A stretch of 64,000 nucleotides of DNA. Source: Lepidodermella squamata. Lineage: Eukaryota > Animalia > Gastrotricha. The notes under the pieces were generated by a model. The model was not told where the DNA came from. It worked only from the letters and a program-made list of their open reading frames with translations, and searched no databases. Each line of letters starts with the position of its first letter. The first letter of the stretch is position 1. A program made the translations under genes and the position numbers. Location of the stretch: positions 806,001 through 870,000 of the forward strand of contig JBLDXI010000048.1 of assembly GCA_047495785.1 (NCBI GenBank), written 5' to 3'. Below, piece after piece: positions 47,501 through 50,500 of the stretch.

Positions 47501-50500
47501 GGCGGCAGCCTGAAAAATCAAAAATAATGAAAAACAATCTGAAAATATAAAATTTACAAAAATATACTCACATTTTGATCAATCGCGTCAACTCCACCCA
47601 TGAAGCAATTGTAATTATTTACATGATTCGGCTTCATACGAGGCTCAGCACTTTCATCGTCACGCTTCGCCTGGCCGTCATCATCATCATCCAGGCGAGA
47701 CCTTTTGGCCTCAGGTCCTGGTTCTTCGTCATTTTCGCGACGTCGCTTTTGTGTCACCGGCTTCGGCATCGCGTAAACCTCGAGGTCATCTTCGTCGCTT
47801 TCACTCGATTCACTCGATGCGAAACTCACGTCAAATTCGCTGCTGGAATCACCTTGGTCGGCCGAATCCTCGGGTGTTTCCGGTTCATCGTTCACGCGGT
47901 CGGCACGTTCAGCGGCGAGCCTCATTTCTTCCGCTTGACGCTTGGCTCGATCAGCAGCTAACTGTAAGCGCTTTGGGAGAGGCACTTCAACCATTTCCGG
48001 GTAAAATTCAGTAGATATCATCAACACCGGGCGCTTATCCTGCCATTTCGACACGTAAACCGGGCCGCTTCGGAGCCAGAACAGCTCGTTTGGTTGAAGT
48101 TTTCTTGAAATTACGGCTTGAGGATTGCCTTTTCGCTTTGGATTCAAGGTACCTAAAATCAGGAAAGTTGCCATTTTCGTTGTAAAAACTGTGGTTATCT
48201 CTGACCTGTTACGAGAACTGCTTTCTCGAATAGGCATCGGGCAAGTTCGACGGAATTATAGAAGTTATCCATGAAAAGCGAGTGAAATTTGTGCAGAAAA
48301 TCTCGTATAAGCGCTAAAACCACAGAAGCAGTGTGGCCTTTTTTCGCATCGATGAAGTCTTTGGGCGAGTCAGCACCAGAATAAACGGCGAATCGCAAAG
48401 CCATACTATTTTCAGAGTCGCTCAGCATGTAGATTTTCAACCCCCATCTGTCAAAAAAAGTTGTAAAATAATGAACATTTTTTTCTGAAATTTAAAAAAT
48501 TTCGAAGCGCGGAAAAAGCGCGGAAAACGTTCAAAAACATGCTTACTTATGCTTTTTGTTCCTAATATATTGACGGAAGCCTAATCGCCCTTTGAAGCCA
48601 ATCATTTGCTCATCGAGAGACAAATTTTTGCCAGGATTGTACACTCTTTTCATCACGTTGTTGAAATTGTCGATAATCGGTCGAATCTGGAAAAATATTC
48701 GGAAATAAAAAAATAATTTATTATAATTGAAAAAATCCAACCTTCCAGAGCCGATCTCCGACTTCAAGTTCTGACTTTCTGCTATTGTCGACAAAATGCA
48801 GGCACGAGAGTATTTGCTGGAAGCGATTTCGGGACATGATATTGCCAAAAGCCGGCGTTTTCAAAAGCCAGCTTTGAGACCAGTAGCTGGCAAGTGTAGG
48901 CTTCACGATGATGCCCATCAAAAAACAAATACCAAGGAATTTCAAATATTCGTCAGGCGTAAGGTCTTTCCAGCCAATAATTCTCGCATTTGGCAGAGTA
49001 TTATTTGCCAGTTTTTCTTTGGCATATCGGTTGGTTTCTTGGCATATCATGAGAATTATTGCTTGATTGATGAAAAGCTGAAGATAACCGAGAGGATTTA
49101 TTCGCGAAAGAGGCTTTTCAATCAACGCCCGAACACCGCGAAAGGTAAAATCGTTGTGGGGCGCTCGAGTTTGCGTCCATTCGTCATCACCTGATGAGGC
49201 CATGAGTATTTATTTCTTCAAAATTTCTGCAAATTGAAAATGAATTTTGATGCTATTTTTCGAAGCGCATGACTTCTTGGACTGCGAATGCCTCGATGCG
49301 CATGACTGATTTTTTGCGTGCAAATAGGACTTTCGCCCACAGTCGCCTGCCTATTCATCACGAAATTGCCGCGCCAAATTATGAACGAACAAACGGTGAC
49401 CGCAATTATTCAAAATTTTATTTCCGATGACAAAATTGCGGCAAACAGTAGAAAGCGACCAGGTATTACAAAAATTAGCATGGAAAATTACAAATTTACA
49501 AATTTTCAAATTTTCAAATTTTCAAATTACATTTATCGATTCTATTCAACACTGTCGTTTTCAAAGAACAAAAATGGGCGCAGAAAAATTGATAAGAACA
49601 GATATATAAAGAATGAACAGAGAGTAACAATATATTTACAGATATATTACAGAAGGCAACGCAGAAGGCAACGCAGAAGGCAACGCATTCAAACGTTTCT
49701 TCGCGGGCGACCGCGCCCACGCTTCGGCTGGTTTGCTGGTTGATTCGGCTGCTGGTTCGGCTCGGCTAGGCCACGGAAGACGAACAACTGCGGCGGCGTG
49801 GCAGGACGGATCGGCGCAACAGCAGGAAGCTCGGCATCGGGAAGTTCGACGACTTGCGCTTGAGGTGTCGGGGGTCGAAAAGGCGAGATCGGAGCAGCCT
49901 GAGGTTCGTCAGCAACCTAGAATGATAAAGATATTATTCTATCTACCGATTTCCACGCGGCAATCACTTTACCTCATCAATGAACACCAGCAGCGGCGTC
50001 GGCGGTCGAGGAGGGGGCGGCGGCAATGCCGGTCGCTCAACGTCGGCCGCAGGCGCGGGCGCATCATCGGGTGCAGCTGCAGGCGCATGACCATCTGCGT
50101 TTCCGGCACCCCCGCAACGATTGGCGTTGTAGTGCGGCCTGGCTGGAGGTCGACGCCGGATTAGCACAAGAAGACAGAAGATGGCCAACGCGACGGTCCA
50201 CAGCAGAAACGCACTGCCCGCACCGAAACCAGCAGCGAGAGCGATGACAACGAAGTAGTCTTCGGTAGTTGAAGGCGCGTCGGTAGTTGGAAAAGCCGTA
50301 GTCGTTGTCGTAGTCGTAGTTGTGGCTGTTTCGCGGCTGAACAGCGTAGTTGTCGAAGACGACGTATACGAAGCTGGCACCACGCCCTGGTCGGAGTATT
50401 CTAGGTCATAATGAAACATTTTGCTAAAACTTGAGTAGACTTGCGAAAATGAGAATTTTTTCCTTCCTTTTCATCATTATAAAGCTCATATTGCCCTCTG

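Follow-up and report, generated by a model that had tools for sequence, protein, structure and literature searches.

piggyBac transposons, widely used as genome-engineering tools, are regarded as one-gene elements, and to our knowledge the transposase is the only gene of ordinary members. Conserved extra genes move with the transposase in PIF/Harbinger (the Myb-like ORF2), MuDR (mudrB), En/Spm (TnpA), and Teratorn, as they do at the locus described here. At the nuclear envelope, a C-terminal AT-hook lets ELYS initiate the assembly of envelope and pores on chromatin, and Heh2 is targeted by a long disordered linker together with a basic signal. The isolated HMGA1 AT-hook 1 peptide binds the minor groove of (TTAA)2 and AATT DNA with micromolar Kd (crystal structure 8CPG; PMC11526092). 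Teratorn is a piggyBac-herpesvirus fusion of 41-182 kb (PMC6431247).

The window analyzed here is a stretch of 64,000 nucleotides from the gastrotrich Lepidodermella squamata. We are highly confident that it holds, beside a piggyBac transposase, a real two-exon gene that is a conserved accessory gene of the element. The predicted product is a single-pass membrane protein whose C terminus is an AT-hook. We found no description in the literature of a membrane-anchored AT-hook protein carried by piggyBac, and a review of about a hundred AT-hook proteins nowhere mentions membranes.

The piggyBac element and its four genes

Three multi-copy piggyBac families in the genome carry the gene; the window copy belongs to family 1. 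The element had been described beforehand as a TTAA-targeting transposon, and it has TTAA at both ends, 19-nt terminal inverted repeats (TIRs), and a transposase with the DDE_Tnp_1_7 domain (Table 1). TTAA and TIRs are also seen at the ends of family 2, and the element occupies several unrelated sites: the C30 copy has a different flank, likewise with TTAA, and copies at 99.7% identity lie at different TTAA sites with unrelated flanks. Judged from these copies, the whole four-gene unit transposes.

The transposase exons are 28-55% identical to the family-2 transposase. We infer that the 5' end of the transposase gene is operon-like or spliced; in family 2, tttcag stands 19 nt upstream of its ATG (compare the acceptor in Table 1). 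The promoter element GTAATTACAG occurs once in the 64 kb, against 0.09 occurrences expected. In each of the three families it stands a single time, ~200-230 nt ahead of the homologous ATG and always on the same strand.

Two further accessory genes lie on the other strand. The third accessory ORF, which has no Pfam match, is 23-29% identical to its family-2 counterpart. Cargo gene 2 is truncated in the window copy by a ~915-bp deletion near 51569. Its signal peptide, Cys-rich domain, and C-terminal transmembrane helices fit the Kar5/GEX1 architecture, and an Atlas protein-language-model search placed it near the KAR5/Tht1 nuclear-fusion cluster (0.81, rank 6). The family 1 and 2 proteins gave no Pfam match to Kar5/GEX1/Brambleberry (Tht1 or other) at E<=10, and the AlphaFold2 model of the product was of too low quality (pLDDT 47) to support a fold search. 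We treat kinship with Kar5/GEX1 as a lead only.

Table 1. Positions in the window of the element, its genes, and associated sequence features
Feature	Position	Strand	Details
Left end: TTAA target site and TIR	46572..46590	+	19 nt, 95% complementary to right TIR; TIR TTAACCCTTTCAGTGCCGA
piggyBac transposase gene, spliced	47081..49203	-	Pfam DDE_Tnp_1_7 E=9e-26; ~55-97-nt GT..AG introns
Strong 3' splice acceptor ttttcaatttgcag	49227..49240	-	23 nt upstream of transposase ATG
Candidate polyadenylation signal AATAAA of membrane/AT-hook gene	49417..49422	-	Family 2: AATAAA ~170 nt past stop codon
AT-rich tandem repeat, 8-nt unit CAAATTTT (AAAATTTG on minus strand), x4.8	49491..49528	.	Between AT-hook gene and transposase
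12-nt tandem repeat, x3.2	49650..49687	.	Just past stop codon; copy number varies among copies, C30 one unit fewer
Exon 2	49689..49916	-	75 codons + TGA; Pro-rich tail, PPQLFVFRG motif, C-terminal AT-hook
AT-hook KRGRGRPRR	49698..49724	-	8/9 residues identical to HMGA1 AT-hook 1; conserved in families 2 and 3
Phase-0 GT..AG intron, 56 nt	49917..49972	-	Donor and acceptor kept in C23 copy
Exon 1	49973..50419	-	Acidic N terminus, poly-Thr, transmembrane helix, RRR, first part of Pro/Ala tail
Predicted transmembrane segment	50159..50251	-	Residues 57-87; conserved ALAAGFGAG small-xxx-small motif
Run of 9 Thr codons	50297..50323	-	Residues 33-41
Conserved promoter element GTAATTACAG	50632..50641	-	In GC-rich divergent intergenic region
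Cargo gene 2	50898..51581	+	Signal peptide, Cys-rich domain, multi-pass membrane protein
Third accessory ORF (earlier called BEN-like)	51556..52011	+	5' part lost in the same ~915-bp deletion
Right TIR and TTAA	52484..52502	-	Pairs with left 19-nt TIR

Gene model

On the minus strand, a 151-aa ORF opens with the ATG at 50419 and spans the 9-Thr run, the hydrophobic segment, RRR, and a Pro/Ala-rich tail with PRPPTP; exon 2 contains FRPPTP and IRPATP. The stalk, long hydrophobic segment, RRR, and Pro/Ala repeats noted in the preliminary description are thus all visible in the translation of the two exons. That description had also proposed a phase-0 intron leading to a hidden 76-codon exon absent from the ORF list, and we recover both, the exon being 75 codons and a TGA. 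Exon 2 is missing from the list because it has no ATG and its sole alternative start gives <40 aa. The donor is GAG|gtaaag (49973/49972) and the acceptor ttctag|GTT (49917/49916); the intron is in the size class of the transposase introns, and its retention would bring in an in-frame TGA. On comparative grounds we take the gene to be spliced at 49973/49916, with a predicted product of 149 + 75 residues.

Homologues in other families and evidence of selection

A search of other piggyBac copies for homologues, which had been suggested at the outset, found them in two further, deeply diverged families of the same genome. Each has an intronless homologue at 37-45% identity in the same place, between the transposase and the divergently transcribed gene for the cysteine-rich membrane protein. 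Family 2 has intronless ORFs of 207-210 aa in 3 copies; in family 3, one ORF was read complete and a second copy stands at 96% identity. A genome-wide profile search of this genome missed family 3, which was reached via the neighbor gene.

All families share an N-terminal motif, poly-Thr, an ALAA-type helix, a basic stop-transfer, the LFVF motif, and the C-terminal end R-G-R-P-[RK]-[RK]; one ends in RPRRGRPKKTQA with the stop codon directly after. The homology goes beyond that of composition-preserving shuffles (Smith-Waterman z=4.7-17.6). For exon 2, BLASTP against the family-2 protein had its alignment suppressed by composition adjustment, and shuffle-controlled Smith-Waterman, used instead, gave z=6.3 and 4.7 against the tails of families 2 and 3.

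Two outcomes had been named in advance as fatal to the gene model or the AT-hook: use of the stop at 49964 in place of the splice, and loss of RGRP among homologues. Both readings hold, because the intronless homologues of the two other families, which read without interruption through the region spliced in family 1, end in the RGRP tip; RGRP is thus present in three diverged piggyBac families. Fusion of the AT-hook ORF to the transposase was considered and rejected, a stop codon following right after the AT-hook in all three families.

Gene order and orientation are identical in the three families, with the family-3 transposase, the family-3 ends, and the C15 copy placed by coordinates only, and all four genes are comparably diverged. 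Among these paralogous element families of one genome the conservation holds, and the comparison indicates that the gene is a conserved accessory component of a piggyBac clade and more than casual cargo. The label "cargo," used for the gene earlier, understates a member of a conserved four-gene unit that codiverged with the transposase.

Within family 1, the window copy differs from the 90%-identical C23 copy by 33 substitutions in this gene, 21 of them at third codon positions (P=3.5e-4; dN/dS 0.26). By codon position, exon 1 substitutions number 7/4/18; exon 2 has 3 synonymous and 1 nonsynonymous (dN/dS 0.12). In the C23 copy a 19-nt insertion disrupts the reading frame past codon 17, and the other two indels are in frame. 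In family 2, copies C7 and C25 differ by 10 synonymous and 5 nonsynonymous changes. The substitution pattern indicates that the gene is under selection.

Protein architecture and predicted topology

The N-terminal part, ~56 residues, is acidic, Thr-rich, and disordered. It leads into the 31-residue hydrophobic segment, with a Kyte-Doolittle 19-mer maximum of 2.7, and the basic RRR (residues 88-90) follows directly on its C-terminal side. The remaining 137 residues form a Pro-rich disordered tail with a conserved PP-x-LFVF-R/Q-G motif and a canonical AT-hook at the end. Across families, each protein has one hydrophobic helix (stretches of 30-32 residues, maxima of 2.3-2.7) and a Thr run of 9 to 13 residues. 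The N-side flank carries a charge of -1 to -6 and the C-side flank, with RRR or KRPR, +3 to +4. An AlphaFold2 model of the family-2 homologue likewise has one helix (pLDDT 83-93), a tail at pLDDT ~50, and an otherwise disordered chain. The single-pass topology proposed earlier agrees with this single helix and with the charge bias, and an N-out/C-in orientation is predicted. Given the positive-inside rule, the charge bias would place the tail on the cytoplasm or nucleoplasm side.

The C-terminal AT-hook of the preliminary description is confirmed as KRGRGRPRR. Its RGRP core has basic residues on both sides (in one family the tip reads RPR-RGRP-KK), and its surroundings are disordered in the family-2 model. 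Pfam AT_hook gave no match at E<=10, the motif being too short for the filters. Of the only 7 occurrences in 121 Mb of a pattern coding for RGRGRPRR, 5 belong to this gene family.

The product was also called mucin-like, which stands as a statement of composition, since a Ser/Thr-rich tract is present. It does not extend further: no mucin family was reached at threshold, and a signal peptide is lacking in families 1 and 2, whose N termini are acidic and nonhydrophobic, with the frame just upstream of the start closed or without a start codon, although an exon farther upstream is conceivable. We saw no LEM, HEH, Tudor, or RS domain, and no Pfam domain of any kind, in the accessory proteins.

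A tentative role as a membrane-to-DNA tether

As a whole explanation, we tentatively favor a real, selected accessory gene whose product would act as a membrane-to-DNA tether that helps the element, a reading to which we give slightly less than even weight. One component is better founded, in that we lean modestly toward use of the AT-hook for nucleic acid binding. The KRGRGRPRK peptide alone binds (TTAA)2 DNA with a Kd of 1.5 uM (PMC11526092). Since the hook is one conservative residue away from HMGA1 AT-hook 1, the tip of the tail can presumably grip AT-rich DNA. The AT-rich CAAATTTT repeat within the element is a possible binding site. Avidity could come from helix-driven oligomerization and crowding on the membrane.

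A tether at the nuclear envelope specifically is doubtful, if conceivable. The inner nuclear membrane would be the probable site; the protein could get there by diffusing and being retained, or through NLS-like import that uses the basic tip on its long linker. Its probable co-workers would be the third ORF and the Cys-rich membrane protein inherited along with it.

Some observations sit poorly with a tether. The 30-32-residue hydrophobic stretch and poly-Thr stalk are more in keeping with a protein of the plasma membrane, or one glycosylated in the Golgi, than with a nuclear-envelope resident, and in such a setting a cytoplasmic AT-hook would have no DNA to bind. A lone AT-hook is a weak binder, and cargo gene 2, which the preliminary description proposed as the partner, is incomplete in the window copy.

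An extended form of the tether reading, which we regard as unlikely, is that this piggyBac clade encodes its own nuclear-envelope toolkit: a Kar5/GEX1-like envelope protein, an inner-membrane AT-hook protein, and a small DNA-binding protein. A single bidirectional promoter would drive the three genes, and the transposase would come downstream in an operon-like unit. With such a toolkit the excised element, or target chromatin, might be retained at the envelope or kept inside the nucleus while the cell divides, and germline transposition would rise as a result. If true, an AT-hook protein anchored in a membrane would be a first, as would an accessory system based on membranes in a eukaryotic cut-and-paste transposon.

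Database searches and alternative explanations

Searches beyond this genome used exons 1 and 2 separately, the family-2 homologue, a profile, and, for metagenome and viral contigs, the neighbor-gene alignment; they found no homologue of the AT-hook protein. Word-indexed protein searches with exon 1, the family-2 homologue, and cargo gene 2 returned no matches, and nothing in Pfam rose above threshold for any accessory protein. A PDB sequence search with exon 2 gave a single chance match, CD83 (E 0.58), which was set aside. Metagenome and viral contig scans with the neighbor-gene alignment were blank, and a viral origin is therefore unsupported.

The remaining similarities bear on the alternative that the product is a secretory-pathway or cell-surface glycoprotein, like small viral envelope or sialomucin proteins, which we consider improbable. 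Here the Thr-rich N terminus would be O-glycosylated outside the cell, and the RGRP-RR tip would be an Arg-based sorting or retention signal, or would bind RNA or acidic lipids in place of DNA. A poly-Thr stalk with a long hydrophobic helix, as found here at 30-32 residues, is typical of late-secretory membranes. The MGC-24 sialomucin profile gave a weak similarity below threshold (E 0.19, 12.5 bits against the Pfam cutoff of 28.5), and the nearest named Atlas neighbor was the herpesvirus UL132 glycoprotein (0.78), in a look-up at chance level. A HMMER profile search of 1.84 billion representatives gave 8 matches (E 1e-5 to 9e-4). None has an AT-hook and all are generic proteins with a Ser/Thr stalk and a transmembrane segment, so we rejected them as compositional; that only such proteins came back nevertheless speaks for this alternative. 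However, all of these scores are at chance level, and families 1 and 2 lack a signal peptide. Moreover, the exact AT-hook core and its basic flanks are kept at the extreme C terminus in families only ~40% identical, whereas an RXR or basic signal would need no G-R-P.

Less probable still is a membrane-tethered regulator whose tail is freed by proteolysis (compare SREBP, ATF6, and Notch) and moves into the nucleus. Its AT-hook would there assist the transposase or third ORF in binding to AT-rich or GTAATTACAG sites of the element. The basic tip is also an NLS-like cluster, the conserved LFVF motif might offer a docking site, and the transposon contains AT-rich repeats as well as a conserved promoter element that includes TAATTA. 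Yet we found no recognizable protease site or second DNA-binding domain, and the rest of the tail is low-complexity.

Finally, we reject as very improbable a functionless passenger or chance ORF in GC-rich, stop-poor DNA with an AT-hook arising by compositional coincidence (Arg/Gly/Pro): although a 143-aa ORF is open on the opposite strand too, the sequence is low-complexity, all external searches were blank, and the C23 copy is frameshifted, the third-position excess appears in this frame only (in the antisense ORF the same sites fall at first or second positions), the 19-nt insertion is the sole indel that breaks the frame, three families keep the architecture and motifs beyond shuffled controls, and the place next to the transposase is conserved.

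Comparison with known systems

If the tether reading is right, a membrane-anchored AT-hook would be a new way of linking DNA to membrane and a simple handle on how mobile DNA copes with the nuclear envelope. Its proposed logic, a DNA or chromatin binder linked to the nuclear-envelope membrane, is that of ELYS/MEL-28, LBR, LEM-domain proteins, and Heh1/Heh2, and the tail of the product, a long disordered linker with a basic signal, may resemble Heh2 in its targeting. ELYS, however, is without a transmembrane helix, and LBR, LEM-domain, and Heh proteins use Tudor/RS, LEM, or HEH domains absent from our protein, so that the likeness is functional only.

CD164/MGC-24, glycophorin-type proteins, and herpesvirus UL132 share the Ser/Thr-rich stalk, the single small-xxx-small helix, and the basic stop-transfer. 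None of them ends in an AT-hook, their scores fall below every threshold, and family 1 and 2 proteins differ from small mucin-like proteins in having no signal peptide. With HMGA1 AT-hook 1 (8CPG, PMC11526092) the product shares the nonapeptide at 8/9 residues, the RGRP core with basic flanks, and the disordered chain. Whereas HMGA is soluble and nuclear and has three hooks as well as an acidic tail, the product described here is membrane-anchored and transposon-encoded, with a single C-terminal hook and no similarity outside it.

In contrast to Teratorn, the present elements measure ~6-8 kb. Of their three small orphan genes, two encode membrane proteins, and none of the accessory proteins is like known transposon accessory proteins. 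Since these three extra genes have been kept through divergence to ~25-50% identity, they probably contribute to the success of the element.

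Gene structure and selection on the reading frame

The window's membrane/AT-hook gene reads on the minus strand as the preliminary description had it, with a poly-Thr run, a hydrophobic segment, RRR, a Pro/Ala tail and an AT-hook end. The exon 1 product has an acidic N-terminus (net charge of -6 across 56 residues) that includes nine consecutive Thr residues (33 to 41), followed by 31 hydrophobic residues (57 to 87) and RRR. The predicted structure of the family-2 homologue has one confident helix and disorder elsewhere. Retention of the intron would bring a TGA three codons on, where the protein would end. 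The introns of the transposase gene in the same element are GT..AG and, as a rule, 55-97 nt long.

Features of the element and its surroundings, in window coordinates (L032, C30 family-1 copy; L063, family-2 locus; L069, family-3 locus)
Feature	Position	Strand	Description	Counterpart
piggyBac element	46572-52502		5,931 bp; 19-nt inverted ends, flanked by TTAA on either side
Exon 1	50419 (ATG) to 49973	-	Acidic N-terminus, Thr run, hydrophobic segment, RRR, Pro/Ala-rich stretch
Intron	49972-49917	-	56 nt; donor GAG/gtaaag, acceptor ttctag/
Exon 2	49916-49689	-	Phase 0, 75 codons, AT-hook terminus, then TGA
12-mer repeat	49650-49687		x3.2, between AT-hook gene and transposase
8-mer repeat	49491-49528		AT-rich AAAATTTG x4.8, same spacer
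AATAAA	49417-49422	-	3' of AT-hook gene	L063:~6205-6210 (-)
Splice acceptor	49227-49240	-	Strong (T)TTCAG/TTGCAG, 19-23 nt 5' of transposase ATG (families 1 and 2)	L063:~5951-5960 (-)
GTAATTACAG	50632-50641	-	Within GCGCGC-rich DNA, once per element	L063:7212-7221 (-); L069:4133-4142 (+)
Cargo gene 2	50898 onward		Divergently transcribed
Deletion breakpoint	~51569		Element position 4998; ~915 bp absent	L032:7573-8486
EGF-like and Laminin_G_3 exons	52775-53795 and 45556-46266	-	On both sides of element
NB-ARC/NACHT-ankyrin ORF	15393-18047	-	Large, single-exon; NB-ARC/NACHT-type ATPase joined to long ankyrin-repeat array

Between the window (C48) copy and the C23 copy, substitutions at first, second and third codon positions numbered 7/4/18 in exon 1 and 0/1/3 in exon 2, a third-position excess of 21/33 over both exons (binomial P=3.5e-4). 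The Nei-Gojobori dN/dS was 0.26 for both exons and 0.12 for exon 2 alone, and exon 2 was the least divergent region (1.8%, vs 7.1% for the intron and 4.6% upstream). A 143-aa ORF occupies the opposite strand. In its frame the changed third positions fall at codon position one or two, so the membrane/AT-hook frame is the selected one. In family 2, the C7 and C25 copies differ by 10 synonymous and 5 nonsynonymous changes.

Homologues in two further piggyBac families

A search of the species' own genome (121 Mb in 151 contigs, from an invertebrate with small introns), with exon 1 alone as the query, returned three distant ORFs at 38% identity, on C7, C25, and C50. These are intronless, encode 207-210 aa, and belong to a distinct piggyBac family (family 2; 7,849 bp, with ends TTAACTCATTGACTGCC and TTAACTCTTTCACTGCC) represented by three insertions with different flanks. 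A search with the neighboring cargo gene 2 revealed family 3, with copies on C30 and C15. Proteins of all three families share an N-terminal motif and Thr run, a 30-32-residue helix starting ALAAG/ALAAS and followed by RRR or KRPR, a Pro-rich tail carrying PPxLFVF(R/Q)G, and an AT-hook at most 1-4 residues from the C-terminus.

Local alignment scores were compared with 2,000 composition-preserving shuffles. Exon 1 against families 2 and 3 gave z values of 15.3 and 10.7, scores reached by 0/2,000 shuffles; exon 2 gave 6.3 against the family-2 tail (0/2,000) and 4.7 against the family-3 tail (1/2,000). Since the homologues read continuously through the region spliced in family 1, exon 2 must join exon 1, which upholds the phase-0 intron and hidden exon that had been proposed; nor is RGRP lost among homologues, an outcome that the description named as refuting its reading, the hook being present in families 1-3. 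Five of the seven matches to an RGRGRPRR-coding pattern in 121 Mb are membrane/AT-hook genes.

Individual copies vary. The C50 family-2 copy (L064) bears a 356-bp deletion (equivalent to L063:6051-6406) removing the last 8 codons of the membrane/AT-hook gene, AT-hook included, and the pre-transposase spacer, and its transposase has a TAA stop. The gap between AT-hook gene and transposase in family 3 is ~3.1 kb on C30 (G000:C30:219677-222779), probably reflecting a nested insertion, vs ~0.9 kb on C15.

Accessory gene or casual cargo

A spliced DDE_Tnp_1_7 transposase lies downstream of the membrane/AT-hook gene on the same strand, and the third ORF follows cargo gene 2. All three families keep one order: third ORF <- cargo gene 2 <- and -> membrane/AT-hook gene -> transposase. 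Divergence is similar across the four genes (the transposase being compared for families 1 and 2): between families 1 and 2, identity is 28-55% for the transposase, 48% for cargo gene 2, 23-29% for the third ORF, and 37-45% for the membrane/AT-hook protein; against family 3 it is 38% for cargo gene 2 and 39-45% for the membrane/AT-hook protein, and about 23% for the third ORF between families 2 and 3. The earlier label of cargo understates the gene's place in the element; the fixed gene order and the similar divergence speak against casual cargo and mark it as an accessory gene. Other piggyBac families of the genome (33-40% transposase identity) gave no match to cargo gene 2.

No separate transposase promoter is evident in the spacer following the AT-hook gene in families 1 and 2, and the two genes are laid out like an operon that would rely on trans-splicing or a spliced 5' UTR. 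The 12-mer repeat directly follows the AT-hook gene's stop codon, and its unit count varies between the C48 and C30 copies. In all three families, GTAATTACAG lies ~200-230 nt 5' of the membrane/AT-hook ATG, and the 64-kb window contains it once vs 0.09 expected; it reads as a promoter element that is conserved and has TAATTA at its core, and possibly also as an AT-hook site. A large host gene of the lectin/EGF type probably harbors the piggyBac in one of its introns. The NB-ARC/NACHT-ankyrin ORF elsewhere in the window has an innate-immunity-type architecture.

Mobility and decay of family-1 copies

The C30 family-1 copy is 99.7% identical to that of the window and occupies an unrelated TTAA site; because near-identical copies occupy unrelated TTAA sites, the whole unit moves. 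The window copy lacks ~915 bp kept in the C30 and C23 copies. This deletion costs cargo gene 2 its final ~90 residues and also takes the spacer and the beginning of the third ORF, so that the full-length family-1 element is the C30 copy, at 6.8 kb. The proposal of a 40-nt intron that joins these two ORFs (51481-52011) may rest on an artefact of the same deletion.

The ~90% identical C23 copy (L033:1145-5506 = G000:C23:1248144-1252505) still carries both accessory genes together with its right end and has lost the transposase, homology stopping 3-5 nt past the AT-hook gene's stop codon. Repeat slippage of 19 nt breaks the AT-hook frame after codon 17, and two TAA stops interrupt cargo gene 2; this copy is a decaying remnant. 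Short elements of ~1-2 kb that have only both family-1 ends in common (G000:C31:202173-203669, C105:46857-48088, C7:3153724-3155012, and C32:3411265-3413323) are probably nonautonomous MITE-like derivatives.

Proposed function and relation to known systems

Charge asymmetry would orient the tail toward the cytoplasm or nucleoplasm. Its tip would bind AT-rich DNA, and crowding in the membrane together with a conserved small-xxx-small motif in the helix would add avidity; for the hook to meet DNA, the membrane would be the inner nuclear membrane or an envelope that is reassembling around chromatin. In its combination of a long disordered linker (~100-150 residues) with a basic tip, the tail recalls Heh2-type targeting. 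The cargo gene 2 product combines a signal peptide with seven conserved Cys and with helices at the C-terminal end, and a protein-language-model search gave a weak lead to KAR5 nuclear-fusion proteins that lacks Pfam support. The long helix and Thr stalk speak against a nuclear-envelope site, being better suited to late-secretory membranes; for this reason, we consider it only slightly more probable than not that the AT-hook binds nucleic acid, and a membrane-to-DNA tether a tentative reading, less likely than not.

Protein, profile, metagenome, and viral-contig searches outside the species' own genome found nothing credible for either the membrane/AT-hook protein or cargo gene 2, and the accessory proteins matched no Pfam family. 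Within reach of these collections, the membrane/AT-hook family appears to be an orphan. An AT-hook review never mentions membranes, and the literature on the term combination searched concerns ELYS-type proteins throughout. The C-terminal AT-hook of ELYS links chromatin to the envelope; ELYS and inner-membrane tethers follow a similar logic, although the membrane/AT-hook protein has none of their domains. The gene belongs to known kinds, as an AT-hook protein and as part of a DNA transposon with accessory proteins. Its hook is of the HMGA type, differing from HMGA1 AT-hook 1 (KRGRGRPRK) solely in the final K to R; that free nonapeptide binds (TTAA)2 and AATT DNA at 1.5-5.8 uM (PMC11526092). 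The piggyBac elements known to carry additional genes are giant herpesvirus fusions (PMC6431247).
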